A stretch of DNA of 23,472 nucleotides from Zygophlyctis sp. KS116. Its lineage: Eukaryota; Fungi; Chytridiomycota. Within the stretch, counting starts at the first letter, position 1. Every line of letters begins with the position of its first letter. The DNA lies in the NCBI GenBank assembly GCA_054661495.1, contig BAAFSQ010000155.1, positions 1 through 23,472 on the forward strand, given 5' to 3'. The translations under genes were made by a program, and so were the position numbers. This document shows, one piece after another, positions 1,451-23,472 of the stretch. The notes beneath the pieces are model-generated. The model was given only the letters and a program-made list of their open reading frames with translations, searched no databases and had not been told where the DNA came from.

Positions 1451-3398
1451 TTACGTTCGTGGTTCAATAGCCAACGAAACAGCGTATCCGTGTTCTTCTG
1501 ATAATGGACAGTAATTTGAAATGTAATCAGTCAGCTCAAAATTGATTGTGAAATAGTAGGGTGTATCCTGATAAATCTAATAAATCTAATGAATTTCTTA
1601 ATCTTACCTTTAGTCCAATTACATGTGATGCCATCCTATAAACTTTTTGATAGTTTATAATGCCATTATCTAGAATTGTAGGGCCAGTAGAGTCTAGAAA
1701 TACTATATCACCCTGATATATTCCAAGAAATGGAATTAAAGGAGGTTGAGATACACTGATCTTTTGTCGAAATATTTTATAATTTAAGCTTGTACAAGTG
1801 ATTTCTTCTAAAGATTCTTGAATTTTTATACATTTTGAAGATAATGCCTAATTAAATTAATTAAAAAATTGAAATTACAGCTTTTGTTTTCTTTAATCTA
1901 AAAACAGGGCTCATGTTAAGTCCAGATAAGACATTTGACATCCCTTGAAAATTATTCAATTTCTCTAAATTCTAATCTTAATGTTTTTATAAAGTACCAG
2001 AGATAAATAAATCATAAATTCCATAACTTCAACTCGTTCTTTGAGAGTTTTTCTTGTCAAGATCTCTGATGAGACCCAATAAGAAACATGATTACTCCAT
2101 TGTATAAACTGTGTCATTCCAAGGGATGAGTACTTTTTATCTTTTTTCATCCAATTTAATTCTAAAAATTCACGAAGATTAATTGAAGAAAAGAATTTGA
2201 AATCTAACAATGTTAATTGCTTTGCAATTTCTTCTGGGCTAGAGTCTAAAAGTACATCATTTTTCTTCTTTTTTAAAGAGACTACTCTCTTTAAAAGATC
2301 TAATTTTGTAGATTCAAGAGGTGCTGAAATTGACATTGATCGAGAATCTCGTTTTGAGCCTGTCATCTATTCGATAAAAAGAAAACACTTTTACCCTTTT
2401 TTTAATTAGCCGAAGAATCATTTGTGACATTCCTGAAACTGAACCTGTTGTGTTAGTGTTTAAATTCTCTAATTGTGCACATAATTTCCCAATTAAACTA
2501 GAATCCGTTTCAAAATCTATGAAATAGTTATCAATCCAATACTTTAAAATATTAATAAGCCGTGAAATCTTTAAAATATCATTAGAATCCTTTTCTTGAT
2601 TTAGCCTAGAAAGAATCAACTTCAAAAATATTTTTGACTCCATAAACATACGAAAACTAAATACAAATATTTGTAAAAATCTTGTATCTGATGATGTGGG
2701 ATCTACTAAATAATCTACTAATTTCTGAATACTCCCAGTTTTGACAAATTTTTCTGATCCATCAATTACAAAACTTAACTCTTCCTCTGTCCCAGTATGT
2801 AAACTTTCAAAAGAAACTGGAAGAACCGATTTCTTCTCTAATAAGTCTTGATAATAATGCTTTTGAGTTTCTAATTCCAACTCTAAATTTCGTATTTTTT
2901 CATTAGAATTAGCTAAATTATCTCTTGTATCTTTCAATTCTAGATTTAGACTATCGATAACTTCTTGTTCTTTTTTGAATGATGCAGATTGTATACTTGT
3001 CTTGAGATTTTGATTATATAAATCTAAAAGTTTATGATATTTCTTTGATAGATCATCATATTTAGATTTCAGTTCCTATTATTCAACAAGAATCCTCTTA
3101 CAGCATAATCCTTTTTTATCGGGTCTTGTTGATCATTATTCAAAACTAAATTTCGTAGAGCATCATTCATCCTTTTCTGCAATGAGAAATCTAGTTTTTC
3201 TAATTCGATGTTCCTCTGTTTTAAAATTCCATATTTCTGTTGCAGATCAAACAATTCCCCAGCCAATGTAAATATCTGTTCCTGCCAGTTATTGACTCTT
3301 TCTTCCAATTCTTCTAGCGGTGCTTGCGATATTTCATACATTGAAGGGAATGATTCCAGGCCTAGCAGGCACTTGAGCGCATGGTCAGGATTCGACAT
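1451..3398 (-). CDS. Gene H: RasGEF (N-terminal coiled coil + REM + CDC25 domain); the most canonical copy in the array
   Basis: Hand-spliced through 5 short introns from ATG 3398 (MSNPDHALK) to TAA 1451. REM motifs VKTGSIQKLVDYL, FLQIFVFSFRMF, RLINILKYWIDNYFIDFE. CDC25 motifs PEEIAKQLTLLDF, WVSSEIL, LNNFQG..VLSGLNMSPVFRLKKT, NYKIFR, PPLIPFLGIYQGDIVFLD, INYQK and C-terminal SLAIEPRT*. Confidence 0.92.
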
Positions 3399-3474
3399 TT
3401 TGGACTTAACAAGCGCCCAGTACTTAAACGCAAACAATACTAGACACTCTCGACAGTCTGAAAGAGAATCATTT

Positions 3475-5810
3475 TTATTTCTGAATGCAATACGATGTTA
3501 CTTCAGCAGACATATGATCTATCATGCGAGGATATTTTATGATATGATCTTGGATTTTGGTGTCTGGATTGAAATTGTATCCAATGGATTGCCATTTATG
3601 AAGGTTTTGTATAATGAATGAGACTTTAATCATTCTTTCAACGTTTATCCAGATATGATCATTTCTAATTGATAGTAGATTTAAAGGATCCAATTGATCA
3701 GAGTTATGAGCGTATTTAATTCCAATTTGATCTAATTTTACAAATACAGGAATCAAGGGAGGAGGAGAAGATGATATTCTTTGATTTAAAAAGGATTGAT
3801 TATCTCTATATAAAAGATCTCGAAGTTGATATAAAGTGGATTTTGATTCTCTAGAGAGTTTCTATAATTAGTAAAATTTAATTACATCAAAGGTTTTAGT
3901 GAGTCGATATATGGGTTTGTAAAAAAGTGCGTCAATAATAGATTTAAGTCCGCAAAAGTTATTTAGATTCATCAACTCCTAAATATAAGTAAGATTTTAG
4001 AATTTACTTTTCCAGTTTGAATGAGATGTTTTATAGTAGATGCACGTAACTTGTCATCTTTAATGTTTAAAATTTCTGATATAATCCACCAGCTTAACCG
4101 ATCCGACCATTTGATGATTTTAGGTATTTCAGAGTTTAGAAAATCTCTAGGAGAAGTTTGCTTGAAATATTTAAAATCTAACAAGGATATTTGTCTGGCT
4201 AATTCTTTTGCATCAAAGTCTATAATTCTCAAGATTTTAGATTTTGTATTTTGAGGATCTGGAAGACCAATAGAGGGATTGGATAGGTTTTTAGGTTCGG
4301 TTTGAATCTAAGATATTTAGAGTGTTCAAGTTACTTTTTCAAGACGTTTGGTCAATGTCTTTAATATCAACTGATTTTTACTTGTTGAAATATGATGAGA
4401 GTAAACAAAATCTGTAATCTTTTGTATGTCGTCTTGAAAGTCCGTTGGGAAATAATCAATCCAAAAATCCAAAATATTGACTAAGCAAAAGACTCCAGAG
4501 TCTGGGGCATCAATACCATTTAATTTATGCTTTAGAGTTTCTAGAGTTATATCTAACAAGTCTGATGTTGGTAAAAATAACTGATGATTCAACAAAAATC
4601 CGTATAACAGTCCTAGATCGGTAAACTTGGGCTCAAAAATATGATGAAGCAGTCCTGCTAAAGTTGCAATCTTTAAGGCTTTTTTTCCTTGAATCATGGT
4701 AGATTCGATTTCTTCTGCTCCAAACGCAATTTTCTTTAGATGCGACTCCACTTTCGAATAGATTCGACTCACTGGATTAATCTGCTCGTCATTTTTTGAA
4801 TTGAAAGAAGATTCTTGCTGATTATCTAAATGCACAAATCCGATTGCTAGATTATCATCGCTTTTGTTAGTTTTTTCAGATTTGGTTTCAAATGCTGAAA
4901 CGACAGCATCATAAACTTGACCAGCCCAGGTTGTCCCAATTTTTTCAGTTTGTGAAAACGTCGTTTTTCTTCAGCCAAAGAGCTGATAAAATCACCAGAC
5001 CCACGTGTTTCGTCTTTAGAATTGACATAATTTTCCAAAGCTTCTATATATTCTGGATAAAATCCCAATTCAGCGGGAATATTATTCGCACTTTCGGCTT
5101 TATCTAATGAATCTTTGAGAATTTCTTGAAACTTATAGATCAGCAGAATTAAGAATATCAGTGTTATTTCTTCCAGTAGCATGCTCACTAGATATTACCT
5201 GATCAGATATTTCAGATTGATCATATATGACCGCATTGGAAGACTCATGCGGTTGAAGAGTTTCATGCTGTGATTGCACCATTTGAGAATCATAAGGTCC
5301 CAGAAAATTGTCAGGGCCAATTAGCTGGACAATTCCACTGCCATCATCTGTTAGAAAACTCTGATTTCTTGGCGGAGCTTTGGTCTGGTTTGAATTGATG
5401 TACAATCTATTGTCAAACGTATCCATAATAGGCATGATTCTATTATTATCGAATGGCTTTGATAAAGAGCTTCTCAAGGTTTCCCTGAGTTTTGATTTTC
5501 TCTGTCTGTTTTTGGGATTATCGTTTCCAGTGTCCGAATTACCCGAATCGAGCATGTTATACTTGAACAAAAATGGAGTCTTTTCAGTTATATTATCAGC
5601 TTGCTTTTGTTGCCTTTGGGAACTTCCCCTATTATGGGGGAGCTGAAGTAAGCTGGACCGCTCTAGATCCAATTCATAGTTCTTATCGATAGTTCTTGGT
5701 ATATCTTGATCATTGAACTTTGCATCAATGATTGTTTCTTTGCCTACCAAGGCATTCACTTGATTAAAATCTGCATGAACCATCTGATCGAAAGATGTTG
5801 ATTTCCTCAT
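3475..5810 (-). CDS. Gene G: divergent RasGEF (long low-complexity N-terminus + REM + degenerate CDC25 domain); the 5' part has two unresolved frame breaks
   Basis: 4835->3475 splices cleanly through 3 short introns, with motifs LKIATLAGLLHHI, LVNILDFWIDYFPTDF, DAKELARQISLLDF, LNNFCG...PIYRLTKTF, PPLIPVF, WINVERM. Joining upstream ORFs 5133..5882 and 4847..5188 needs longer (44-67 nt) introns or frameshifts. Start is ATG 5810 or 5882. Confidence 0.7.
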
Positions 5811-5878
5811 GTAATTATTTAATTTCTTTTGTTTACTTGTTAAAAGTGGCACATCGCCACTAAAATCGCATCGAAGAA

Positions 5879-6874
5879 TCATATTTTATTGTGTGTAAAT
5901 ATCTTTTCTCTTTGCATTATTTTAGCTTGCATTAGCTTTCTTAGAGCATCTCTTTTCTCTCTTAATATGCTTTCCTGGAGTTCTAATTTAGAATTATCTT
6001 CATCCCAAACATTCTTGATAGCTTTAAGCTCACTTTCTACATTCTTTAATCGATGATTTAGATTTAGATTTTCCCGTTTTTCAGCTTCTAATTGTAATGC
6101 AGAAGTTGACCGAAATTCTTTAAACTCTTTCTTCGAGTTATGGAGCTCTAAAGATAGAGCTTTAACTTGATTATCAAGAAATACAATCTGGGAAAGTTTG
6201 GAATCATAGTTTTGATTGTGTGTTTGAAGAATATCTGATGTTGGATCATGATGGCGTTTCTTCTGATCTTGCATGTTCTTCATACATTGCAAACAAGGAC
6301 TTGAAATTTGACATTTCAATTCGATCTCCTTTTGATGTAACTCTGTAATTTCAAGTTTAAGATTATTGATAACTTGTTCAAGATCCTTCCTTTCTTGTGA
6401 AATTGGTATTTTCTCTGGTTGTTTTGTAGTGTATTCATTTCCAGCTTTTGTAGTGACTTGTTCTGTTTGTAATTCTTTTTTTCCTCCATGATCGTTTACT
6501 TTGCAGTCTTTGAGTCTTTCATCTGTAAAGTCCGAACCCCGTTCAATATAAGAGGGAAATTCTTCAGTTGAATCTCCAATAAGCATATTAGCAGTAGCCT
6601 TTATGATTGATTTCTTTTTAATATTGGGGATATCCTTCAAGTCCGATTGATCAAATGCATAATTTATGGCATTGTATACTTCCTGGTATATATTCTCTTT
6701 TCTTAGTTCCTGAGATCCGCCTAGGAACTTTATGATTCCTCTATATTCTTCTAGATTTAGATTATAGTTGTCATCAACTAGAGAGCTAGAACTCTGAGAT
6801 TTCTCTGCTTTGGATGCGCTTGCAGATCTGTAATGTGATTTGTCTTGTTGTTTGAAATCGTTATGATTCTTCAT
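5879..6874 (-). CDS. Gene F: apparently intronless ~331-aa protein with C-terminal coiled coil; function unknown
   Basis: Single long ORF, first ATG at 6874 (track starts at an upstream TTG). Heptad-like E/K/L-rich C-terminal half (DLEQVINNLKLEITELHQKEIEL; QVKALSLELHNSKKEF). No recognisable domain. Confidence 0.75.
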   Translation of the reverse strand: MKNHNDFKQQDKSHYRSASASKAEKSQSSSSLVDDNYNLNLEEYRGIIKFLGGSQELRKENIYQEVYNAINYAFDQSDLKDIPNIKKKSIIKATANMLIGDSTEEFPSYIERGSDFTDERLKDCKVNDHGGKKELQTEQVTTKAGNEYTTKQPEKIPISQERKDLEQVINNLKLEITELHQKEIELKCQISSPCLQCMKNMQDQKKRHHDPTSDILQTHNQNYDSKLSQIVFLDNQVKALSLELHNSKKEFKEFRSTSALQLEAEKRENLNLNHRLKNVESELKAIKNVWDEDNSKLELQESILREKRDALRKLMQAKIMQREKIFTHNKI

Positions 6875-6880
6875 CGTAGT

Positions 6881-6900
6881 CAAACGACGCAAACAAACAA
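6881..6900 (-). promoter_or_regulatory. Putative start-proximal motif TTGTTTGTTTGCGTCGTTTG upstream of gene F
   Basis: Ends 6 nt before ATG 6874 and matches the gene E upstream motif, although E and F are not visibly homologous. Confidence 0.5.
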
Positions 6901-6987
6901 ATCATTTCCCACTGGCAGGATTCAAATCAATCAAAGTCTAACAAAAATTCTAACTTATTTTAATCTGATGATGATATATTATTCATA

Positions 6988-8456
6988 TTAAGGCTCCAAT
7001 ATAGCAGAAGCCTCATCGGCCTCTTTTGAAGTGAGCCGTGGATATGTCTTTATGTGATCTTGTATTTCATCAACAGCTTCAAAATGAAATCTTGCTTTCT
7101 GGTAATTTTGTATCCCCTTGATAACAAATGCAACTCCAACCATCTTCTCCACATTTATCCATGTTTCACCTTTTCTTTCTGCTACTAAAGCTCCTGATTT
7201 ATCGTGCGATGCCAAATCCTTGTAATATAATTCAGGATATGGAATTAGAGGTGGATTTAAAGTTTTGATTTTTTCCCTTAATTTTTGATAATCGTCTTTA
7301 TCCGCTACTAGTGATTTGAGTTCATCTAAAGTATCCCTTGATTTTTTAGATAAAAGATTAAATGTTTTTCGTAGTCTAGTGATGCAAGGAGCGAATATCA
7401 CACCCAAAATCATTCTCATAGAATTAAAATTCTTGATTTTGACTAATTCCTTTGATTTAAATTGAAAATTTAAATTACATTTGCTGCAGAAATTATTCGC
7501 TCTATGGTTGCTACTCGAAATTTAACATCATTCACAGTAAGAATTTCAGATATGAGCCAATTTGAGACTGAAGTAGACCATAAAGCCAACTTACAAATGT
7601 TGGGACACAGACTCAATTTTTCCTTCTTTTTCCAATTAGAATCCAAGTATTCTCTCGCTTCAATAGCTTGAAAATATTGAAAATCCATTAGTGATAACTG
7701 CCTAGCTAATTCTATATCATCAAAATCCAATAAAACAAAACGAGATCCCCCTGGAGCTGTTGCAAATGCTTCAGGTTGTGAAGATTTGATAGTAGCTGTT
7801 GGTTTCCAAGATTTTGGAGGATTAATGACAATCATTTTTTTAACTAGAGTATCCGATTTAAGCTGTAATGTAAAAAAAATAGGATTACCTTCTGTTTAAC
7901 TGAATCCGCTAATACCACAAACAAGCCATTAGCTCTAAAATCTTGCGATTGTAAGTTAAAGAATTCTGTAATGAAATCAACACTTTTCGAATCACTTTTA
8001 ATATCCCCAAAGAAGTTATCGATCCAGAATTTTAGGACATTTGCAACTCTTTCATTAATCAGACTAATGTTACCTAAATACTTCTGCTTTAGCATGCTCA
8101 GTATGATCTTCAGCTCTCTCTTTCCATTTTTCCAATAATATCTCTAACAAGTTCCAGCTTTTAATGAATGCCACATGATGAAGCAAAAAGGCATAAATAA
8201 ATCCCAAATCATTCATTTTCACATCGATCAAATAATTTAATATTGCATGTACAGATCCACATTTGAGAGTTTTATTAGGCCCAGTTATAACAAATAAAAG
8301 TCCATTGTCTTCTATTTCTGTTGAAATCTCCTTCTTGGCTGATGCCGGTTGTTTTACTTGTGATCCTGGGACTGCACTCACTGCAGATTCAGTCTTTTTT
8401 CCAGAAATGATTCTCTTAAAGATCTTTAGAGCACTGCTGATTTTCGGCAATTTCAT
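6988..8456 (-). CDS. Gene E: compact RasGEF (REM + CDC25 domain)
   Basis: Four exons joined in frame by 3 short GT-AG introns. Motifs LKCGSVHAILNYL, RVANVLKFWIDNFFGD, DDIELARQLSLMDF, WLISEIL, KNFNSM...ITRLRKTF, YQKLRE..PPLIPY, WINVEKM, ending SAILEP*. Confidence 0.92.
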
Positions 8457-8467
8457 TATAATCTATA

Positions 8468-8489
8468 AACAAACGCCGCAAACAAACAA
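8468..8489 (-). promoter_or_regulatory. Putative start-proximal motif TTGTTTGTTTGCGGCGTTTG upstream of gene E
   Basis: 19/20 identical to the sequence upstream of gene F and fills most of a 34-bp intergenic gap. Function is inferred only. Confidence 0.5.
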
Positions 8490-8490
8490 T

Positions 8491-11400
8491 TTATTGATTT
8501 AACATTTCTAATCGGACAGCAGTATCTTCGGCCTCCTTGGGCATTAGCACAGGATATTTAAGAATATGTTCTTGGATCGATTGCACTTGCTGGAATTGAT
8601 AATCGCAAGCTTGGAATTTTTGGATATCCAGTACCGTTTTAGCAACGCCCACCAGTTTTTCTATATTGATCCATTTAGTTTGACTATCCTCTTCAGCAGT
8701 GATCAGATCGCCGAGTGAATCGAAAAATCCAAGGTCAGAATAATATAAAGGTAATAGTGGCATGAGTGGGACTGACGAAGAAGAGAGACGGTTGCGTAGA
8801 TTTGAATATCCAAAATCTTGAGACATGAGCTTCTTTAAATCTTCAAGATATAATTTAGAGCCATCTGAAAGACCCTGTTTGTAAGATCAATCGTACTTAC
8901 ATTTTTGGTCTTTTGGAGATAATTTGCTGCATTATTATTCAAAACAGCCTTTAAAATATGTCTAATACCATTAAAATTATTCATGGAATCAAGATGCTAT
9001 AATTTAAGAGATAAAATATTACTCTAGCAGTTGCGATGATATGTTCAACGGTTGCTATTCTAAACGCCAAGTCAGAAACAAGAACAATCTCTGAAACCAG
9101 CCACTGAACAATATGATTAGCCAATTGTACAAGTTTGCAAACGTTAGGAGCATTAAAAAGTTTCTCAGTCTTTGACCAGTTACCATCAATCAATTCTCTG
9201 GGATTGATTTGTTGAAAAAATGCAAAATCCATCAATGTTAACTGTCTAGCTAATTCTTCTGGCTCAAAATCTAACAGAACAAACTTTGAAGGGGACCTTT
9301 CTATAAACGCCCCTTTGTGTTTTTTCTTGAAAGTTGCGACAGGAAGAAACGGTGACGGACAATTTACTAGTGTTTGAATTTTAACTGTTTCGTCATTAAC
9401 CAAAATCTGCTGATTATTTTTGATAAACATTACCTTTTCTTTGATGATTCCTGTTATGTTATTGACTTTTGTTGGATCGGAGGATGTTGATTCCCGATTA
9501 ACATAATTTGTTATAAGACTCAAAACTTTTGGTTCATCTCTAAAGTCGAAGAAAAAATTTTGAAGCCATATTTCCAATACTTTAGACACCCTTTTAATCA
9601 TTCTGTTACTAAAATACCGTTCGCTCTCTTTGACAGCCTCTTCGCCATCTTCTCCATTTTTATCTCTCCATCTCATTAATAGAGCTTCAAGTAATTCATC
9701 ACTAGGTATAAACAAGCGGTGATGAAGAAATAACCCAAATGCTATTGAAGAATACTCGGTGTTCTGTAAATCAACAATGTGTTTTAAAAGAAATGGAATA
9801 GTTGATGATATCAGTGTATTTCGACCATTTTTGACAAAGAATTTCATTGATTTGGATATTTTTTGCAATATTACTCCTTCTGGAATATTAAGACGCTTTA
9901 CAGACTCCTTTTTTAAATGTACTATGATTTTTAGGAGGTCCTTTTTTTCAGCTTTTAATTTTTCGTCGAAATCTGATTGCTTTTCCTTTAATTTGGTTCT
10001 TAGAAAATCATTATCTCTTTTAGAGATAGCCAGTTCCTCTTCCACCACATTGAGCTTCTGCTTAAGTTCCTAAAAATTACAAAATATTCAAATACATCAA
10101 TTTTTCCATGGAACTTAACTTTAATATCATCCATTCTTTCCGAAGCTTGCTGATAAAACTGCTCCTTTATATAAATAAACACTCAATTTATACCTGTGCT
10201 TTAGATTCTGGATGAAAGTTCGATTCTGATAACGTCTTTGTCAATTTTTTTTCATCAGCAAATGAGCTCAAATCAACAATACTTCGACTGTTTTGATTCA
10301 AAAATAATCCCTTTGGCATAAAGAATGCCGCTTTATAAGGAATCCCTTCATCTTTGGCTACTTGAGTCTTTAATTTCTTGATATAGTTCCGAATGATGGG
10401 AACGATGTTAAAAACATATGACACTTTTTGATAATTCTATTGGTGAGTATCCTTAGTTTCCGTACCTTAATTTCTAAAATGGGAACTGCAGATAGCTGAA
10501 GGGCGTAAAACTGAATTATTCCTTCTTTTTGCTGAAGACTAGCGCAGGAATTCAAATACAAAAGCTGACCCTGATACATTTCTATTGGTGGAATCAGTGG
10601 CCCCTTTGATTGTGCTATCCTATCACGCAAGTACTTATAATCTTCCTCTGGGGAAAGAAGATTTTTCATATTTTCCAGTACTTTCAAGTGATGTTTTTCT
10701 TTTTTTATCTTTGAGACCAAATGAGAATCAAAAATTAACGAAAAAATGTACATTGATGAAAAATTATTTAACTGCTCTAGATTCTAACTATTAAAATTTG
10801 CCAACTCACCTCTACTATACCAAGCATCAGCTCAAAAGCTTGAAGCCGTAGTTTATCATCTTTAAATGATGATAATTCAGAAATGAGAAAATTAGAAAGA
10901 CTTTTTTTCCATTTTTCGTATGCAGAAATACTTGGGGAAGCATTTTCGTCATCGACACGCCAATATTGATTAAGAAGCTCTCTAGCTGAAATAGCACCAA
11001 ATAACTCGAATTCGATTAATGTCAGTTGTCGGGCGAATTCCAGAGGGTTGAATGATAAGAGCACATTTGTCGTAACAGGTTTTGGAATGATTGCATTTGG
11101 AGGCTTTGGAGGAATTTCATCTAATGATTCTTGTGATTTGTTTAGCTAAAATAAATTTAAGACAAGCAAATACCTTATTTTCCAGCAATTTTTTTAAAGT
11201 TTGTAGGATGTTATTAAATCCCTTTGTTTTAGCATGCTCTGATAAAAATGCATCTAGTGTAGCGAGTAGCATATCATTTTTATCAAAATCATCAAAATGA
11301 TTATCTAACCAGTATTTTAGAGAATTCCCAATGCTTCAAATTAAAATATTTCAAATTACCGTAATACATTATGATCGCCCCCTTCAAACCTATTTTTGAT

Positions 11401-12497
11401 TCCTTCCTGCATATTCTTAATCAATATTTTCAATAAATCTAGCGAATCAACGAATAAATGATGACTAAGGAAAAACGTCTGTAAAAATCCCAAGTCGAAT
11501 GCAGCAGGATCAAGCAAGCGATCAACAAGATCCTTAGCTGTTCCAGACTTAACTAACTTTTTACCATCATCGTTTTCCACAATCACAAGAGTCGGGAGTT
11601 CTGGTTCTTCTTCATAAGTTTGCCCTGAAGACTAATTCTTAGTTAGTTTTTTAAATTTACATTCAATAAGGCTTTAAATGCATCTCGCTCTTCTTTTAAT
11701 TTTTCTATTTGTTTTAAATACTCTGCTGAATCTTCCGATATCTCTGATTTTTTTCCAGAATCAGATATAGCCCTGTTCAAATTCGTAGTCAACTCGTGAA
11801 TTTTGAATTTATTGAAACTGATAATTTCTTCCTTTTCAATAACTTTCTCGAGGCTATCAGAAATTACAGTTTCAAATTCAGCCAGAAGAATATTAAATTT
11901 TTCTTCCTCAGAAATATTAGAGCCTTCCTATCAGTTATTGATTGAGTTTTAGTTACAAGCATATGCTTGATTCCGACAAGATTCTTTGGTGCCGTTTTCT
12001 TTAGAAGATCTGTCATTAATTTTGTTCTATCTTTTAAAACAGAGTCCGAATCTTTTGTTTCACAGTGCTCATCAGTGACCTTCCCAAACTCGAACCTCTT
12101 TAATAATTGGTTTTTTTCCTTTATCAATGCCATCAGTTGTACATCCTTTTCTGGAGCAGTTTTGATAATTTCCTGGAGTAAATTATTATTGAATTATTAC
12201 TTGATACTTTGGCATTAATTTTTCCATTGTCTGCAAAATAGAAACATATCTAGATTCATTTCTTTCTAGCAATATGTCTTTACTTTCAGATCTTAAAAGG
12301 AGCTTTTTTAATTCTTTGTTGCTTTTATTAAGATTTGGCATGGAATCGGACGACATGGTTTTTCCTGGATTGTCTGAAATGCCGGGCCTTTCTTTCTCAA
12401 ACAGTATTCCTAAGCTTTCTTTTAGCTGCTGGTTGTGCAGATTCTCAATGGATCGCTGCCATTTCTCCTTATTGTTTGATAGATTTAAATCGGACAT
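8491..12497 (-). CDS. Gene D: protein with two tandem REM+CDC25 RasGEF modules (D1 ~11590-10370, D2 ~9850-8491) joined by a coiled-coil linker
   Basis: Spliced from ATG 12497 to TAA 8491. The frame continues past D1 through short exons (..ESKAQ|EQFYQ..GKID|ELKQKLNVVEEEL) into ORF 8981..10048. Both modules have [EF]xARQLTL, LNNF/MNNF and P-x-P motifs. Confidence 0.85.
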
Positions 12498-12509
12498 GAT
12501 ACGGAAGTT

Positions 12510-12516
12510 ACGACGC
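12510..12516 (-). promoter_or_regulatory. Putative GCGTCGT core motif upstream of gene D
   Basis: 12 nt before ATG 12497 in a locally CpG-rich patch; same core as upstream of E and F. Confidence 0.4.
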
Positions 12517-12738
12517 GAGAGCCGTCTTAAACAGATTTATAGCGGAGATTTACGATATCAGGCATACGTCACCCTCTTCGATTGGTTCTTTTCAGCTATT
12601 TAAAATGCACTGCATACTACAAACTACATCATTCTTAATAAAATGATCGAATAAACTGATTTAAATTACATCCCCAATATTTAAAACTTCCGAAAGTTGG
12701 GACATGAATTGTGATTTCAAGTAGCGTTCCAATGATTG

Positions 12739-15734
12739 TCAATGATTGTCATCATTTTCAATAGGGCATTTTATTCTGGTATCTATATATTTTTGGATGA
12801 TTGGGATCGTTTGCAAAATATACGGTACAGATTGAAATGCCTACCAATATGAAAAATGAAGTATATACCTGTAATTCAAGAATCTTTTCTGATGTTTGAT
12901 AGATTTTTTGAAAGTTAACTTTTCCATCTTCGAATAGAGTCTGTCCACAAGTATCAATAAAAGCCAAATCTGAAAGATATATGTCGATTTGCGGGGTGAT
13001 TGGAGCAGTAGACTCTGATATTCTATTTCTAAGCTTTTTATAATTAAGCTCATTAGAGCAAAGCAATTTAATCGATGAAAGGATATTTTGATATTTCTGA
13101 TTGAGCGTCTGGTATTTTTAGTAATAGAGTAAAAATACATCTTTGACTTTTTTTAATGCATAAACAGCTGGAGATTTTATGACTTTTATGACCATTTTCA
13201 CACCTGAAAAATTATTGAGTTTTTCCATGTGCTTTTGTATTAACAACCAAAAAATGTACCTGTGCAATTGAGATAATCTTTTCAAGAATTTGCAATTGGA
13301 TTTTGGGATTTCCATTTGACACAATTTCTGTCACAAGCCAATTCACTACCAGCCTTTCCCAACTCAAATAAGTTAACAGATTAGCAGCCTTGATTTCTTT
13401 TCCTTCCTTGAGCCAGTTAACTCCAATAAATTCCCGTGGCTTGATTTTACAGAAAAGTTCATGGTCAATTAGTGTGATTTGGCGAGCTAGCTCCAAAGCG
13501 TCAAAGTCTAGAAACACATAATCCAGCGACTCTTTTGGATAAATGGGCCGTGGTGCATTGATCAAGTTTAGTTTAGTTTGATTATTTTCTTTTGTGAGCT
13601 ATTATTTATATGAACAAAATAGTTGGATACCTTTCTTTTAATATTTCCAATTAGCATTGTAAATATTGATTCATATCCAGGCTTCTGAGAATTATCTAAC
13701 AGAAAGCAGTTTAATCTTTGAAGTAATGCTTCTTGAGTTTCAAAATCTTCAAAAAAGTTCTTTATCCAAGTTTTAAGAATATTAGACATTCTTTTGATTA
13801 CTAAATATATTGCTACCTCAAAAGTGTTGGTTTTCCTTCCGCCTCAACCATGGACTTCTCCATGATCTTTAGTATGTTTTCTAGTACTGTCATACTGGTT
13901 GTGAATAATTCATGATTCATTAGTAATGAGTTGGTTAAATCCAGATTGCCTGAATCAGAAGTTAGAAAATCAATTAAATCCAGAACATAAGCAGATTTAA
14001 TTGATTTTCGACCATCTGCTCGTTCTGAATAAAGTATATCCCCACGTAAATCAGTTTGATTTTTATTTTCCTCTAACTCCTTTATTAGGATGCTATTTTT
14101 CCGACTTGGTGATTGTATGGTGTAAAGAATCTAAGATGAATATTAAAACCCTGTTTTACATCTTCAATATTATCTTGGGGTTGTTCATATTTGTCAGCTT
14201 TCATTGATTCGACTTCAGATGAAAGTGATTCAATCTGCATTTTCAGAGACTTGTTCTCTGTTTTAAGTGCTTCAGCGTCGATGTTAAGAGTGTCGATTTT
14301 AATAAAATTCAGCTGGTTTTGCTCTTGTAGAAAGGCCCGCTCGATTTCCAAATCCTCAATTTGTTTAAGATTTTGATAATATAACTTATAATCAGATATT
14401 AACAACTACCGGCTCGAAGTTTGGGGTTTCCTGCAATAATATAAGTTGTTCGTTGACTAGCTGGGCTGCCTATTATTAAATTGAAAATTTTGATACGTTT
14501 TTCTCTATTTCATAATCGATCAACCGATTTTCAGCCTGCTGTAACTTTGACAAAAGTTCATCATATTGCTTCATCAAGCTCTAATTTTTAGTTAATTTGT
14601 CTACCGAAAATCTATCCTTCATTTCTATTTCGAATTTTAATAAATTAGCCTTTTCCTGATCATCTGCTTGACTCTTAGTTTCATATTTCTGAGAAATAAA
14701 CTTGATCTTAAATATACCATGATCTTTTCACTCAGATACGCATTTTGAGATTGTATTTTTTCAATAATATCACGACTCTCCAATTTTTTCAATTCTCTCT
14801 GTTATAAGTAAATAAAGATATACAGTTTCCATGCCTTGATTAAAATCACTACATATTTTAGTGGCAAACGATGAAATGTCTAGATTTCCAGGTGAAACTG
14901 GAGATTCTTGAATAAGTTTTTTATCCTTATCATTCAGCTTGGAAAACACCCATTCAATTTCATTAATAATTGAATCTAAAACATCTTTTCTGGATAGTGA
15001 GGCATCCATGGACTAGAAATTATGAAAATATAAGCTACTTTTTGCGTATTACTAGTTTTTGTTTTATCAGATTGAGCTAGACTATTAGCTTTATTCGTAA
15101 CAATAAACGAATAAATGCCCCTTATTTGATCCTCAAAATCCTTTTCATTCTGAACTAGTATTGAATTTACTTGCTTTAAATTAATGAATTTGAATTTACA
15201 TCTAACGACTGCTGAATCATTTGGAATTTCAATTCCATAGATTCGACCTCATCTTGCCAAGATATTCCAAAACTCTCCATATCATCAGTGTATTTTTCGT
15301 CTTTTTCTACATATTTACTCTGTAGATTCTATAGTGAGAAAATAAAAGAGTACATTTATTTCTGACTTGAGGCCGTCAATTTGCTCATCTTTGCGAGAAA
15401 TATTATCGTAAACTTGAAAGATATGGGTCACTAGTAGATCAATATCACTCCTGGCAAATCGCAAAATATTCAAAATTTCATCCGATAAATCATCCATAGG
15501 CGGTAAATTGGTAACTTTTAGAGATTCTGGGATCGGTAACTTGTTTATACTGTTCTGAACAAACTGACTTAATTCCTTTACATAAATTATGATATCCTTT
15601 GCTCTTGTTTCAACTATAGAATTTCTTGATTTTCTCATTCTTGAAAGTTCTGCTTCCAGTTTATAATTTAATGTTTTCAGAATTACAATCTCTTCTTCAG
15701 GTTTGGAATCTTTTAGAATACTTTTCATTGACAT
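12739..15734 (-). CDS. Gene C: coiled-coil N-terminus + REM + CDC25 RasGEF
   Basis: Multi-exon model from ATG 15734 to TGA 12739. Motifs IKSAYVLDLIDFL, RMSNILKTWIKNFFEDFE, DALELARQITLIDHELF, WLVTEIV, LNNFSG..SPAVYALKK, NYKKLR..APITPQIDIYLSDLAFID, GKVNFQK. Start codon is uncertain. Confidence 0.85.
13122..13761. repeat. 640-bp near-identical direct repeat, copy 1 (in gene C)
   Basis: Matches 18516-19155 at offset 5394. Track ORFs 13212..13565 and 18606..18959 are identical. I found one mismatch by eye (a13721 vs g19115, synonymous CTT/CTC). Confidence 0.95.
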
Positions 15735-15946
15735 TTCATCATGAATGACGTTTCATCATTTATGTCCGAACATTAAAAAATTAGAGTTGTAATCAGCATG
15801 GACTAGAGTTTGTTTTCTTCATATTTTGGTGTGGAATGATGGGATTTTACATGTTTTTTTGGCTCTTTCAAGTTTACAAAAATTGCGCGTTTTCTTTAGT
15901 TTTCGAAGAAATTTTTCTTTGGATTTTATGTACTCGTACCAAAAAA

Positions 15947-18092
15947 TCAAAAATTAGAATTCAAACTCATATCAGATCGAGATAATATAGTTTCCATGTT
16001 TGAATACTTTCTTTCCAAGTACTGCATGTTTAATAATTGTTTTTTAATCTTACAAAAAATTGTTCCTTTAAGCATTCTTTTTCCGAGCGTAAGATACTGA
16101 TTTCCGTCTCATAATGAAGAAAAGAATCCTGACTCTAAAGATATCAAATAATACAATAGACATACATGCTGGGAATGTTGTATAGATAATTTTTTCATTG
16201 CCTTTACAGATTTTTCTTGGGTTTTCTTAGATTCTTCCAGTACATGATCATAAAGCTGTTCTATTCTCTATTTATAAGCCTGATAAATATACTTCTAATT
16301 GTTCCATTAAACATCGCTTTTCTGATATCTGGCATAAAATTTGATTTTTAAGTCGATCTATTTCCTCCAAATACTGATCAATATAAGTATTTTCAGCATT
16401 ATTTTGCAGCTGATTTCCCACTATTTTAAGTTGAAATACTGATTCTTTATATTTCTAAACTATTATAGAATTTTTAATACCTCTAGCTCTTCTTCGGCAT
16501 TCATTGCACGATCCAAGAGTAAATCCAATCTAACCTCGTATTCCATCCTGCTCACTTGGTCTGCATTTTCAGTTCTTATTTTTTCCTCATAATTTGCTAT
16601 TATTTTTTTCAAATTTGAGTTTGTCGCCATTGATTCATCAAGCCTCTTCTTCAAATAAATATTATCATCCTGAATTTGAAGTAAACTCTCGTCTTCGTCC
16701 TCGAACTTTCATGAGTTTTTGCGAATTTACCTTTTTGTTATACATATTTTCACATAGAAATCGAATCCGCTGTTTGATTTCCTCTATTATCGCGGTACGA
16801 TCTCCATTAGCATCATTCGTTTTACTGTCCTGATAATTGCGCGAGTCATTATTTGGGACATTTTCTAAAATACAGCTTAAAATTTCTTCTATTTGCAAAG
16901 AAAACTCATTTTCTTTCTTCAAATACGTTGTATTCATGCTCTATCTTTCAGAAATTAAAATCGTACATGTAATTTCTCATTGAGAGAATTGATCTCTTTT
17001 TGGAAGCCTTTTTTATCTTCTGCATATTTCGAAGAAAGCAACTTGAAATATGCCTCAACGTCTTGCGCTTTTTTTGAAATTTGAGATTTAAGTTCCTAAA
17101 TATCAGGTTCAAAAGATACCTCTAATTGAGCCTGTTTTGATAATTTTTCTCGAGATACTCTATTTAATTCTTCTTCCTTTTGGGATAACATACTAGAAAA
17201 ATCCTATAATTTTAAAAAAAAACATAATACTTGTAATGCATTCTGACTAATGACAACCTTTTCTTTAAGCGATTCAATATCATCCTCATATCCTATAACC
17301 AAACTATCAATATCTTCTTCATATCCTTGATGAATTTCTTGAATTTCCTTTTCTTTGATCTATCTTTAATTTTATAAACCATACCTCTAGTCTTTCTTTT
17401 AAAGACTTGATTTCGTTTACGAATGTTTCTTCTTTCTCTGCTAACTTAGATTCAAGAGTTTGATAGCATCCTCTAAGACGAATTATTTCCTGATTTGTAT
17501 GCATCGAAGAATCATCCTGGTTATTTCGTGATTTAAGATCTGTATTTAAATACAATTCCTAAAATCAAAACAAGCATTCTAACCTGTTGAAATGGTATCA
17601 TTTGAATCATTGATGAGTTTTTTACATTCAACTTCTTCTAAGTTTATAAAACAATTATCGGATTACTGAATTGTTCCTATTTCCAGCGACTCCCCCAGCG
17701 TTTTCTCCTTCTTGCCCAAGATCTTTTTCTTTCAATGTTTCAGGAGTATCCTATTCCATGAGACTCTAAAAACATACGTTTTTCTGTCTTTCCAATAAAC
17801 TATACATTCTTGAGATCCTTTCTTCTAATATACTGTCCAAATCAGATCCTTTGTCTGGTTGATTATCATGATCAGACTTGCTTTTGACGGATTCATGTGT
17901 TGAGCTCATTCTACTATGATTTGGCTCTTTATCAGCAATATCGGACTTTTGGGACTCCTTCTCTTTGATTCCTTTTGGGCTATCTGTTGAATCTTTCTGA
18001 TGACTAAAGCTCTTGAATCTATTCAGCACAGATCCCCATGAATCCGATGACATGAGATTATTGGACGATAGGTGACGTCGCCCCATGGCCAT
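15947..18092 (-). CDS. Gene B: coiled-coil protein without a GEF domain; its C-terminal part is paralogous to gene A
   Basis: Exons join in frame through 24-31 nt GT-AG introns from ATG 18092 (or 18053) to about TGA 15947; the 3' end is uncertain. Contains LLDRAMNAEEELE and QYLEEIDRLKNQ...SEKRCLMEQLE, shared with gene A. Confidence 0.7.
16083..16545. repeat. Diverged duplicated segment (gene B) paralogous to ~21290-21755 (gene A)
   Basis: Shared blocks ctagctcttcttc, tttcctccaaatactgatc, gataatttttt and tactgatttccgtctcata at an offset of ~5205, with three introns at the same positions. Confidence 0.9.
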
Positions 18093-18121
18093 AGCACTAG
18101 TAAAAATATATTTATTATATT

Positions 18122-21100
18122 TTAATGCTTCAAAGTAGCTGCTACAGATTGATCTTCATTCATGATCTTTCTCTTTCCGATGTAATTTTTAATTGCCTGA
18201 ACCGGTTCTAGGCTATAACATGTAGTTTGATAAGACTAATGTTAATAAAATATCAAATTTTTACAATGATTTGACTTATACAAGACATTATTCTATGGAA
18301 CTTTTGGAAATTGATTGATCCGTCTGATAATTTGTCCGGACCACAAGTATCAAGAAACATTAAATCACTTTGATAAACATCATGAGGGATAATAAGTGGA
18401 ACAGCAACCTCTTGTGCCTTATTTCGCAGCGTTTTATAATTTAATTCAGGATTTACCAAGATCTCCAATGATTCCAAAGTTTTCTTAGCCTTGGAAGTGA
18501 TTTGCTAATGTTAAATAATAGAGTAAAAATACATCTTTGACTTTTTTTAATGCATAAACAGCTGGAGATTTTATGACTTTTATGACCATTTTCACACCTG
18601 AAAAATTATTGAGTTTTTCCATGTGCTTTTGTATTAACAACCAAAAAATGTACCTGTGCAATTGAGATAATCTTTTCAAGAATTTGCAATTGGATTTTGG
18701 GATTTCCATTTGACACAATTTCTGTCACAAGCCAATTCACTACCAGCCTTTCCCAACTCAAATAAGTTAACAGATTAGCAGCCTTGATTTCTTTTCCTTC
18801 CTTGAGCCAGTTAACTCCAATAAATTCCCGTGGCTTGATTTTACAGAAAAGTTCATGGTCAATTAGTGTGATTTGGCGAGCTAGCTCCAAAGCGTCAAAG
18901 TCTAGAAACACATAATCCAGCGACTCTTTTGGATAAATGGGCCGTGGTGCATTGATCAAGTTTAGTTTAGTTTGATTATTTTCTTTTGTGAGCTATTATT
19001 TATATGAACAAAATAGTTGGATACCTTTCTTTTAATATTTCCAATTAGCATTGTAAATATTGATTCATATCCAGGCTTCTGAGAATTATCTAACAGAAAG
19101 CAGTTTAATCTTTGGAGTAATGCTTCTTGAGTTTCAAAATCTTCAAAAAAGTTCTCTGTCCAATACTTTAGAATGTTTATTATCCTATTTTTAGTGAATA
19201 CGATAGTACCGTAAAGTTATTAGTTTTGAATTGTCAGAAGGTTCTTGCACGTATTTACTAAACTGATTGATAAACGTATCCATCAAATTCATACTTCCCA
19301 TAAATATCGTATGCGTCATAATAAAAGCCCTAAGGTAATCCAAATCAAATTCTTTGGGGTCAAACAGCCGTTCAATTAATTCCTTTAAATGGCCAGATTG
19401 AATTATTTTTTTCCCGTTCACACCCTCACTTATCACTATAATACCCTTTTGCTGACTCGATGTTTTAGATGCATTGGGTACGTCTTCTTTTTTTAATGAC
19501 ATATACTCCAAGTCAGATTTTAGTTTCAGATTTTCATTCATTGTAAGATTGTGCATTGCTTCAGCGATCTTAAAATTACCAGACGATAAAGTGTACCTGA
19601 ATTTTGTCCGCCAATTCAGTATTCTCTTTCAAAATACGCTTATCAGCCTCTAAGAGATCATTTTCCAGGTTGGTTATCTATATTAATAAGAAACCGGAAT
19701 ATACATCTACTTGTAGCTGTATATTTTTTTCTTCCAAAGTAACTAGTTTCAAAGACAAATTTTCAAATTTCCGACGCCATTCCTAATTTCAGTTAAAATG
19801 TTTTACATTGACCTCTTCCCTTAGGTTATAGTTAACTTGGCCTGATTCACGATTTTCTGTTTTTGAATTTTCTAAAAGCAGATCTTTTAAATCCTTTAAT
19901 AGGTTAAAGAACTAAAGTACTTTTAATTGTTCAAGTAAGTAGCTATTTTCAGTTGTCACAATAATATTTTCAGTCGCGAAATCAGATATATTCTTCTGAT
20001 GCTAATTTTAGAGATTAGAAATTATACATCCTCACATTTTCGTTCCAAATCTGAGACTCTGGGCCGATCACGCTGAGACTTTGTTATGGCTTTATTATAC
20101 TTGGTTTCTAGAGTCTGTGCAAGTTAGATAAATTTAAAAATACTGCAAACTGCTCTAATATGCACTTTTTTTCATTGTTTAGACAATTGATGGTAAGCAT
20201 GGATGCTTCAAGTTCTTCGCCCATTTTATTCGATTCATTCCTATTTTTATGAGCTTCTATTCCTACATCTTAAAAGTCAACTCTTCTTCAATTTTAGCCA
20301 TTTGACTTATAAGGCTCTGCAGTTTGAGTTCATAGCCGTCGTTTATTCCTGCATGAGTCGCATGTTCTATTTTAAGTTGCTGAGCATCGATCTCCTTCTT
20401 TAGTGAACGTATTTCTAAATTCAATTTACTGATGCAAATCTATAATTTAATTTTCTTGCAAATCATACTTCCTTCTCTTGAAGTAATTTTTCATTCGTTT
20501 GATTTGTTCTTTGAGCCTCATTCAAGCTTTCCGACAAGAGCTAAATTATTTAATGATACTGAGTTTACTTGTGATTCTTTTTCTAAGTTTAAGCATGTAT
20601 AATTCAAATTTTCGACCTAACTTTAGTTAACACATTTACTTTTAACTGTAATTCTGAAATGATCTGCGTCTTATTACCCAAGGCTAACAAATCAGGTTGC
20701 GTTTTTTCAAGAATTTCTTTATTCACCTAGTAATTTGAATTGTCTGATCTTACCTGTAATTCTTTCTCTAAGTTTGATCGTTTGGTATCTATATCAGATA
20801 AACAAACAATTTTTTGGTCCTAAAAATATTTAATTTCATTAGTAAATATTTACTAAATTTTCTTTCTTTTCACAGTATGATTCCTCTAATTTTTTCATCT
20901 TCTCCTTTAAATTTATAATCTTGCAGTTAGTATTCGAAAATTTTAATACTATTTCCTCAAGCTCCAGAACTCTATAAGTTTCTTGCGCTAATTTATCCTT
21001 CAAATTTCTGATATACTTTTGTGAATTTTTTATTACCTGTTCAGTTAAACCTTTAACAACTTACTTCATTCGGCTGCATTACATCACTGGAAAATTCCAC

Positions 21101-23472
21101 TTTCAAGCAATCAATGTCGTGCAAAAGACTTTGTTCAAGTTTAGAATCTATAACTTTGCTGGCTAATGATGCCGATATTGATTTATTCTGTTTATTTATT
21201 GCTGTTTCATATTCCACTTTCAATTTCTATCATTTAATGGGGGATTTCGATAATTACATTATACTCAACTTCTAAAATATCCTTTTCTGAGCTTAATATA
21301 CTGATTTCCGTCTCATACTGAAGATAAGAATCTTGCCTCTAAAAATATTAATGATTAAGATAGAATATACATTTTGGGAATGTTTTATAGATAATTTTTT
21401 CATGGTGTTCGTAGATTGTTCTTGAGTTTTCTTATTTTCCTCTAAAACATAACCATACACTTGTTCCATTCTCTAGTTCTAAGCATAAAAAAAATACATC
21501 TAATTGTTCCATTAAACACCGCTTTTCTGATAACTGACAGGTCATTTGATTTTTAAGTCGATCAATTTCCTCCAAATACTGATCCATATCAGTAGTGGAA
21601 GTCATATTTGGTTGCTGATTTCTGACTTTTTCAAGATTTAATACCAAATTTTTATTTTTCTAAAGTATTAGTAGATAAATGCTCCTACTTCTAGCTCTTC
21701 TTCAGCATTCAAAGCACGATCGAGTAGTTCGTCTAGCTGACGTTCATAATCTTCTCTTTCAACCAATGGCGCCTCTTCTGTTTTATGATCGTCTATTATG
21801 GTTTCATATTCCAATATTAGTTCATTGAGCTGATTTATCTGCTTCTCTTGCAGCAAGAGTTTTGTTTCTAGCTCTTTATTTTGAAGATTTAATGGAGTGG
21901 CAGAGTTTTGTATATAGTCCTTTCTGCTTAAAAATCTATGTTACCTGCAGTGCCATTTCGGCCGACTTCGTCCTTAGGTTAGAAGAAGCTGTCTCCTGCT
22001 CAAACTTCAGTATCAATGCCTGTAGAACTTCGCTTTTTTCTAAAATAGATTGCTTTTCATTCGTGATATTTCTGATAATCAGGGAATATCCTTCAATGTC
22101 TTCATTTAATCGCTGAATCGTCTTTTTATGTTCTTCTAAAGTATTTTCGTTTTCTTTCAGACTTTTTTGAAGTTCCTTTAAATGAATAAATTGTTAATTA
22201 CGGCAATAAATAAAGTAGAATTTGATAGAATTTCCTCTAAATCATTTTTCAATTTGCTGAGATCGCACTCATCAGCAGTTTTTTGCGTCTAAAAGCAATC
22301 AAAATAAGGAAAACGTACCATGACCGACAGAAAGCCGAATATAGTTGTTCTACCAGCCATATCACTCCTATCCTGAATTTTTTTAAGGGCGTCAAGATTT
22401 TTTTTGCGGTATGTAGCTAAACTATTTCTCATAAATTTGATTTGATCATTTGAATCTTTCTCCTTTAAACTTTTCTCATGAAGAATTTTCTTAATATTAA
22501 ATAAAATATATACCTCGTTTTCCTCTTTTATTACCTTTAACTGATTGGATGCATTTTTGAGTTCATCCTCCAAAATTTTGATTTTTTTTATATCTGCAGC
22601 CGTATTACCCTCAGTAATGCTGCTCCTTAAATTGCTTACGATATCTCCATCAAGGCTTTCTACTTTTTTCTTCAGAGCTAAAAGTTCGGTAGTTAATTCA
22701 TTAATTTTCGTATCCTTATTGATAATTATAGATTCAAGTTTCTTGAGATTTTCTTGATCATTTTTAACGGCGTTTATTTGATCCGAGAGTTCTTTTTCCA
22801 TTAACTGATTATGAGGTTAAAATATAAGTACATTAATACGCATCGAAGCTTGTACTAATATCTCCTCCAATTCTTTCTTGGTACTACTTGAATGATTAGA
22901 TTTCCTGGAAGTCTAACAAGTTAATATCCTGATTTTTACAATTGAAGATAAAAATCCAAGAATTGATGTCTTTCCAGATTCTGTTGTCATCGACTCATTC
23001 GGGATAAAAGCTCTTCGGTATTTGTTGGCAAGCTGATTAATTTCACTTAATTCGCGTAAAACATCTCTCTCTTTTTTCTCAAATTCTTCTCTCATTTTCT
23101 ATTTCTTAATAAAAACTACAATTACCTGTATCTCATCTTCGGCAGATTTAGCTCTTTCACTTTCCAAACGCAGTTGCTCCTGAAGATCATTTTCCTTTTG
23201 AAGATAGTCAGTAGGAATTTGAGAACCAGAAGCATTGTTGGCTTCAGATTCATCCCTCATTTTCTATTTCTTAATAAAAAATACAAACTACCTGGATCTT
23301 CTCTTCTGCAAATTTAGCTCTATCACTTGCCAAACGCAGTTGTTCTTGAAGCTCATTTTCCTTTTGCAGATACTCTGCATGCATAGTGGAAGCAGTTAAA
23401 TTAGTGGCTTCAAATTCATCTCTCATTTTCTATTGCTTAATATAAAATACAAATTACCTGAATCTTCTCTTC
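18122..23472 (-). CDS. Gene A (5' end outside window): very long multi-exon coiled-coil protein with C-terminal REM + CDC25 RasGEF
   Basis: Many short E/K/L-rich exons with 24-32 nt introns. REM motifs IIQSGHLKELIERLFD, YLRAFIMTH, INILKYWTENFFEDFE. CDC25 core is the same as gene C, then NYKTLR..VPLIIPHDVYQSDLMFLD, GSINFQK, ending ATLKH* at 18122. Not every junction in 19.6-21.0 kb was verified codon by codon. Confidence 0.82.
18516..19155. repeat. 640-bp near-identical direct repeat, copy 2 (in gene A)
   Basis: Matches 13122-13761 including the intron sequences. Confidence 0.95.
23080..23472 (-). repeat. Tandem exon+intron repeat in gene A (~166-bp period: 138-nt/46-aa exon + 27-28 nt intron)
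   Basis: Exons 23292-23429 and 23126-23263 both encode KMRDE.EA....YLQKEN.LQEQLRL.S.RAK.AE..IQ. Homologous introns lie at 23430-23457, 23264-23291 and 23099-23125. Confidence 0.93.

Follow-up and report, generated by a model that had tools for sequence, protein, structure and literature searches.

The 23,472-nt stretch of DNA from the chytrid Zygophlyctis sp. KS116 analyzed here (the window) is the entire contig C155, one of 1175 in a 12.7-Mb metagenome-assembled genome, and carries a tandem array of genes for guanine nucleotide exchange factors (GEF) of the RasGEF family, in which a REM domain is followed by a CDC25 domain. Its G+C content is 29–36%, and its sequence has matches in freshwater, lake and estuary metagenomes. 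An initial annotation, made without database searches, had described seven complete REM+CDC25 units within ~18 kb on the minus strand, spread over six genes, mostly strongly diverged from each other and interleaved with coiled-coil genes. A six-frame search of the whole genome with the Pfam profiles RasGEF (PF00617, cut-off 23.1 bits) and RasGEF_N (PF00618) confirmed the seven pairs, all on the minus strand and located between 1641 and 19403:

U1: CDC25 at 1641-2231 and REM at 2482-2745, minus strand
U2: CDC25 at 3739-4205 and REM at 4413-4676, minus strand
U3: CDC25 at 7141-7712 and REM at 8049-8267, minus strand
U4: CDC25 at 8653-9256 and REM at 9509-9808, minus strand
U5: CDC25 at 10505-11040 and REM at 11380-11553, minus strand
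U6: CDC25 at 12902-13493 and REM at 13706-14001, minus strand
U7: CDC25 at 18295-18887 and REM at 19100-19403, minus strand

Scored exon by exon, PF00617 reaches 30–76 bits and thus exceeds the cut-off in all seven units, while the sums over exons range from ~75 bits (U2) to ~147 bits (U1). A REM match lies upstream of every CDC25 domain, with 33.7–63.5 bits for RasGEF_N in the exon scans, and the REM domain of U6 falls below the cut-off solely because a phase-2 intron divides it (26.1 + 23.8 bits). Only seven further CDC25 loci exist elsewhere in the assembly (C20, C353, C229, C19, C107, C113 and C277), so the array holds about half of the roughly 15 CDC25 domains of the genome and this clustering is far from chance, for which simple arithmetic gives an expectation of ~0.02 CDC25 loci per 18 kb. 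The strong divergence is also borne out, as the modules are 22–38% identical in pairwise comparison with the exception of U6 and U7 (66%), whose similarity is due to a near-identical tract of 638 nt described below.

Prokaryote-style open reading frames proved useless as gene models at this locus. The genes were modelled with a splice-aware Viterbi/dynamic-programming finder trained on the window, combined with manual curation of gene ends and doubtful junctions; strict settings split genes and lenient ones merged them, hence the curation by eye. All curated models translate without internal stops, and the joined spliced models were used for alignments, for the ratio of nonsynonymous to synonymous substitution rates (dN/dS) and for the trees. 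Nine genes resulted, all on the minus strand and separated by spacers of 20–241 nt (stop codon to next ATG):

U7, 18122..23472 (runs off the contig end), minus strand: long coiled-coil N-terminus, REM at ~19100-19403, CDC25 at ~18236-18887
B, 15948..18092, minus strand: coiled-coil protein without GEF module
U6, 12739..15734, minus strand: coiled-coil N-terminus, REM and CDC25; 14 introns
U5-U4, 8491..12497, minus strand: two REM+CDC25 modules with a coiled-coil linker, U5 at 11553-10373 and U4 at 9808-8494
U3, 6988..8456, minus strand: short N-terminus, REM and CDC25; 3 introns
X, 5879..6874, minus strand: open frame of 331 amino acids (aa) between U3 and U2
U2, 3475..5810, minus strand: intact REM+CDC25 at 4697-3475, interrupted N-terminal frame upstream at 5810-4698
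U1, 1451..3398, minus strand: coiled-coil N-terminus, REM and CDC25; 5 introns; the final unit of the array
Repeat-protein gene, 1430-2, minus strand: adjoins U1

The seven modules thus occupy six genes as annotated, one of them with two modules. The interleaving with coiled-coil genes stands only in part: B, which is coiled coil only, does sit between GEF genes, with X as the sole other gene in such a position, but most of the coiled coil forms the N-termini of the GEF genes themselves. U7 has about 30 tiny introns, with canonical introns of 27/28 nt connecting the coiled coil to the REM exon; its last exon was located by hand, and the extent of its 5' part is model only. Pfam scans recognized no domain in X, matched no family to the first exon of B and, in the N-terminal exons scanned, gave no family beyond a weak coiled-coil match.

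With the open frame of U4 (362 aa) as query, a word search returned two fragments that were the organism's own and led to independent metagenome scaffolds. One of them (L008, 15.5 kb, from another sample) is colinear with window positions 13183-1 at 93.1% nucleotide identity over 13.3 kb, reproduces the order U1–U5 plus the end of U6 and keeps all GT/AG sites, and a second (L045) covers 16278-14283 at 93.7%, including the junction between the end of B and the start of U6. In three distant relatives (L011, L012 and L013), whose U4 modules are at most 53% identical to that of the window, the order is a B-type unit, the fused U5-U4, U3 and X, all in the same orientation. With these five scaffolds the array is real for U1–U5, where it is not a mis-assembly, and so is the B/U6 junction. 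In L011 the gene upstream of the U5-U4 orthologue (positions 2-337) ends in a B-type (U4/U3-like) module and not in an A-type module as in U6, so that the content of the array differs between lineages. The contig begins and ends in tandemly repeated coding sequence, with units of 135 nt at 1-555 and of 166 nt at 23111-23442, and these repeats are the probable reason why the assembly stopped; L008 runs ~600 nt beyond the window through further repeats of the 135-nt type.

The comparison with L008 also helped with U2, whose N-terminal frame carries a 7-nt deletion near 4973, while the frame of L008 is continuous over 519 aa. An 11-nt difference between the two falls within a likely 67-nt GTA..AG intron (5198-5132), whose length is exceptional in this genome. 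Two introns of the lenient run were rejected here, one of 44 nt starting with GTT, through which L008 reads as conserved coding sequence and which is replaced by the 7-nt deletion, and one of 64 nt, for which the 67-nt intron fits better. The N-terminal part of U2 is therefore either broken in this strain or mis-assembled. Two seeming frame-breaking indels of U3 relative to L008 turned out to be N runs in L008. In two metatranscriptome runs the window is represented by only three or four contigs, all of them short (5411-5808 and 8235-8448). Position 5808, beside the proposed start of U2 at 5810, is the end of two RNA contigs that come from separate studies.

The models of the window contain 78 introns of 23–34 nt (median 27), nearly all of the form GTA...(T/A/C)AG and often with a CTAA/TTAA-like element, and such tiny introns are also present in the more distant relatives. 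Phase 0 accounts for 73 of the 78; elsewhere in the genome, seven loci show a mixture of 17 phase-0, 11 phase-1 and 6 phase-2 introns. All seven units possess a phase-0 intron of only 26–29 nt just before the LNNF helix. The phase-0 intron at the end of the REM domain breaks the frame in six units, and in U4 its place is taken by an in-frame, stop-free segment of 24 nt (9433-9410). A 1-nt deletion in the U4 of L008 falls inside this segment, exactly at the REM-end intron site of the other units, and makes sense only with the segment spliced out; a further in-frame, stop-free segment of U4 (27 nt, 9617-9591) coincides with the phase-2 REM intron of U3, U5, U6, U7 and the gene on C229. Since the U4 orthologues have introns of 24–29 nt at both sites (26–28 nt at the REM end), U4 hides two stop-free introns, and the 362-aa open frame reads straight through both of these predicted introns. 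Introns hidden in this way will inflate protein predictions based on open reading frames in this genome.

Once the in-frame segment of U4 is counted, all seven units do share the two phase-0 introns as the initial annotation had claimed, but its argument from them for local duplication proved weak when intron positions were mapped onto an alignment of the 14 CDC25 domains of the genome. The intron before LNNF occurs in all seven units and C229 but also in the distant paralogues C113 and C19, and nearly every intron of the window is in phase 0 anyway. An intron near Pfam position 110 is common to the array, C277 and C113, the latter being an SH3-REM-CDC25 Cdc25-like gene with the canonical hairpin motif. 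Both positions thus reflect common RasGEF ancestry and not local duplication, and only the intron before the YQ motif (U1, U5, U6 and U7) is specific to part of the array.

The origin of the array is better seen from the phylogeny. An exhaustive profile search started from the U4 frame returned 3068 matches, the analysis covering the best 150 and representatives of clusters at 50% identity, and the best full-length matches were just 27–30% identical to U4. In a CDC25 tree of 96 rows the array units, C229 and the metagenomic orthologues are located near proteins of named chytrids and the six other RasGEFs of the genome fall far from the array. A careful maximum-likelihood tree was calculated from 426 REM+CDC25 columns and 37 rows under LG+C20+F+G4, with support given as ultrafast bootstrap (UFBoot) and Shimodaira–Hasegawa-like approximate likelihood ratio test (SH-aLRT). 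Here the array and the named-chytrid proteins, from Phlyctochytrium, Podochytrium, Fimicolochytrium, Lobulomyces/Clydaea and Polychytrium, form a 100/100 clade of 20 rows. U1–U7, C229, the units of L011 and L013 and P0060, a gene without introns that resembles U1 and lies on a further metagenome contig (L014), form a 97/96 clade with no named-chytrid RasGEF in it. Within the latter, support is 100/100 for a clade of the B-type units (U2, U3, U4 and C229), the partner of U5 is its L011 orthologue and that of U6 is U7.

The seven units are not strictly monophyletic, as C229 nests among them: a tree constrained to unite them and their orthologues to the exclusion of C229 is worse by 58 log-likelihood units (approximately unbiased (AU) test, p=0.0007, for a group defined after the tree was seen). 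That the units go back to a single ancestor that was duplicated within the lineage, as the initial annotation had also proposed, is supported when C229 is included, and the trees support a monophyletic expansion with an eighth member elsewhere in the genome. The C229 gene (4892..2883, minus strand, of L003, which is C229:11000-15891) encodes a coiled coil, REM and CDC25 of the B type and runs off the end of its 15.9-kb contig. Orthologues of U5, U4, U3 and a U1-like gene are found at ~40–60% amino-acid identity in other metagenomes; several duplications predate the split from the L011 lineage, and the expansion is old and not recent.

We consider it likely that the array arose from one chytrid RasGEF gene through an old tandem expansion specific to this lineage. 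An ancestral REM+CDC25 gene, with orthologues in named chytrids that have N-terminal ankyrin repeats, would have been duplicated repeatedly in place and would have split early into two subtypes, namely A (U1, U5, U6 and U7) with a short hairpin loop and the extra intron before the YQ motif, and B (U2, U3, U4 and C229) with a ‘WINVEK’ hairpin. Neighbouring A and B copies would have fused to the double-module gene U5-U4, one copy (C229) would have come to lie on what is now another contig, and U6 and U7 would later have swapped ~640 nt by gene conversion. The tract behind this last step is the following:

U6 copy of the tract, 13122..13759, minus strand: 638 nt
U7 copy of the tract, 18516..19155, minus strand: partner of 13122-13759

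The two copies differ by one mismatch in ~640 nt, two introns included, while the flanks and the genes otherwise are only ~55–60% identical in DNA, which probably points to a recent gene conversion involving the two genes. Over its C-terminal third, B matches U7 (residues 476-658) at 56% identity, but the N-terminal 478 residues of U6 show no significant similarity to the middle part of U7, so that a segmental duplication relating B+U6 to U7 is only partial.

Several observations weigh against this reading of the locus. The 97/96 support of the expansion clade rests on long branches. For the region from 13.2 to 23.5 kb, with the 5' part of U6, B and U7, independent support covers just 14283-16278, and U2 has a broken N-terminal frame in the present assembly. 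None of the contigs from the two metatranscriptome runs crosses an intron or gives a splice joint that would back the splice models, a fused U5-U4 message or co-expression, and the reads yielded no DNA contig bridging the locus. Finally, of 51 positions conserved to at least 80% in 24 relatives, the array units retain 32–40 and the chytrid orthologues 46–48, making catalytic competence uncertain, chiefly for U5 and U2, the most changed modules.

Whether all units are working genes can be judged from their constraint. Relative to L008, dN/dS is 0.12 for U3, 0.17–0.19 for the U1 (0.19), U4 and U5 modules and 0.25 for the U2 module, compared with 0.4–0.7 for the coiled-coil N-termini, X (0.60) and the repeat protein. 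The modules are therefore constrained genes and are kept by purifying selection. They retain the ELARQLTL, NNF(N) and PLIP motifs, and the last exon of U3 matches solved CDC25 domains (RasGRF1 with E=7.5e-13, SOS1 with E=4e-10, SOS1/2 with ~1e-10, for U3 only) as well as RalGPS1 (3.5e-9) and Cdc25 (2.8e-7), its catalytic half aligning from end to end with RasGRF1 and SOS. U1, U4, U6 and U7 preserve the D-L-x-F pattern of the hairpin, U3 and U5 have a weakened version of it, and U2 has lost it. Among the roughly two dozen small GTPases of the genome, two have the Ras effector motif YDPTIEDA(F/Y) and one a Ral-like DYDPTKADSYRK motif. By analogy with the known family, we infer that the array products are exchange factors for the few Ras-family GTPases of the genome (at least two Ras-like and one Ral-like), with partners or locations that would be specific to each copy through its diverged coiled-coil N-terminus. 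In U5 and U2, which evolve faster, catalysis may be altered or lost.

This could be taken further, in that only one or two units would be working GEFs and the others pseudo-GEFs or decaying pseudogenes. As the positions retained indicate, the single-copy chytrid orthologues evolve more slowly than any of the units. In U5 the D-L-x-F-x-D/E hairpin pattern is replaced by Q/Y/N, and U2, besides its broken N-terminal frame, is short of ~12 residues around a conserved Trp and carries an insertion where the hairpin begins. Nevertheless, we regard this explanation as unlikely. Every comparable module, U2 and U5 included, lies within the low dN/dS range of 0.12–0.25 and has conserved splice sites, and orthologues of U5, U4 and U3 are retained across lineages that are ~50% diverged. 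Moreover, the differing hairpin residues vary among active GEFs too, Glu942 of SOS not being conserved in yeast Cdc25 or Epac. The constraint rules out plain pseudogenes, though it is compatible with non-catalytic roles.

In the double gene, U5 and U4 are linked by two canonical introns and a short exon (10164-10096), whose peptide is recognizably conserved in L011 and L013 and has no Met in the L011 copy, and the fused structure and this exon are kept in all three distant relatives. The conserved linking exon without Met favours a single predicted polypeptide, while spacers as short as 20–34 nt elsewhere in the window leave the alternative of two genes. Both modules are found inside the chytrid expansion clade and outside the protist clades d1 and d2, so that the fusion would be independent of the protist double GEFs and U5-U4 looks like a fusion of neighbouring duplicates. 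Double REM+CDC25 proteins are common among the matches (P0016, P0023, P0157, P0152 and ~30 more, from Planoprotostelium, Anaeramoeba, Filamoeba, MMETSP and metagenomes), and their first domains make up one clade and the more diverged second domains another. In the papers searched we found no description of double or tandem RasGEF domains or of chytrid RasGEFs.

The array might accordingly be one of paired modules, in which a non-catalytic CDC25 module regulates a catalytic one, and not a set of redundant GEFs. If so, the degenerate A-type U5 would regulate the well-kept B-type U4, unfused neighbours would act as A/B partners via their coiled coils, and the double proteins of Amoebozoa and Anaeramoeba, in which one domain has likewise diverged, would have reached this arrangement on their own. 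We judge this reading quite unlikely.

Compared to a tandem expansion within one lineage, an ancient multigene family whose A and B subtypes, or even more units, predate the chytrid radiation and were lost elsewhere is an improbable origin. The 96-row tree, a quick one from CDC25 alone, nests the named-chytrid proteins among the A-type units, with weak support of 70–74, and paralogues of other chytrids may be missed with cluster representatives and the best 150 matches only. The REM+CDC25 tree, however, places the units in one clade (97/96) apart from the named chytrids, each of which appears once among the matches listed. An assembly artefact with mis-joined or collapsed paralogous sequence is very improbable even for a fragmented, metagenome-assembled genome in which short reads cannot span the U6/U7 tract, L008 breaks inside this same tract and the contig ends in coding repeats, because assemblies of other samples reproduce the order of U1–U5 with the end of U6 as well as the B/U6 junction, more distant relatives share U5-U4-U3-X, units that differ by 60–75% in sequence cannot be collapsed copies, and the copies of the tract are told apart by one base and by their flanks.

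As an old tandem expansion, the array offers a natural series for studying how exchange factors diverge after duplication, with graded paralogues, a double GEF and a fresh conversion tract, and the locus is a worked example of gene finding where open reading frames can conceal introns of 23–34 nt. Of moderate interest on the side are the double GEF with its independent origin, the conversion tract and the tiny concealed introns. An old, conserved family expansion of this kind is unusual for a fungus, but signalling families commonly expand in tandem, an ordinary route of gene multiplication, and the locus is a well-documented lineage-specific case of it in a known enzyme family and not a new kind of system.

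The nearest named relatives are the chytrid ankyrin-REM-CDC25 proteins (KAJ3107545.1 from Phlyctochytrium planicorne, XP_052923594.1 from Fimicolochytrium, XP_052963205.1 from Polychytrium and KAJ3074393.1 from Podochytrium), which share the 100/100 clade and the same REM-linker-CDC25 layout with the array. They differ from it in number, with one protein per species among the matches listed compared to eight paralogues here, in their N-terminal ankyrin repeats, for which the array has coiled coils, and in their slower evolution. Ankyrin repeats were detected in P0007 and P0026, but none in the N-terminal exons tested of U1, U2, U3, U5-U4, U6 and U7 (a subset of their exons). With RasGRF1 (2IJE), SOS1 (1BKD), SOS2, RalGPS1, yeast Cdc25 and Epac2 the array modules share the two-domain REM+CDC25 unit, at an identity of only ~25–30% and with several family-conserved positions changed. 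The DH-PH, SH3, cNMP or C1 regulatory domains of the solved GEFs are absent from the array units, whose N-termini are coiled coil instead. Two REM+CDC25 modules in one polypeptide, as predicted for U5-U4, are also present in Planoprotostelium (PRP77743.1), Anaeramoeba flamelloides (KAJ6234207.1) and a Filamoeba transcript; in contrast to U5 and U4, the first and second domains of these amoebozoan and Anaeramoeba proteins belong to two separate old clades.

RasGEF expansions as such are already known from Dictyostelium discoideum, an amoebozoan and not a fungus, with at least 25 RasGEF genes (PMC1273635). This expansion is likewise lineage-specific and large relative to the number of Ras GTPases, and many of its members have no other recognizable domain, but PMC1273635 describes no tandem array, and neither ‘cluster’ nor ‘adjacent’ appears in its text. 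Fungi, in turn, have been reported from three Dikarya-type species to keep minimal gene numbers in the Ras module (PMC3141262), and it is this small and static module with which the window contrasts, where eight CDC25 domains would have come from one gene.

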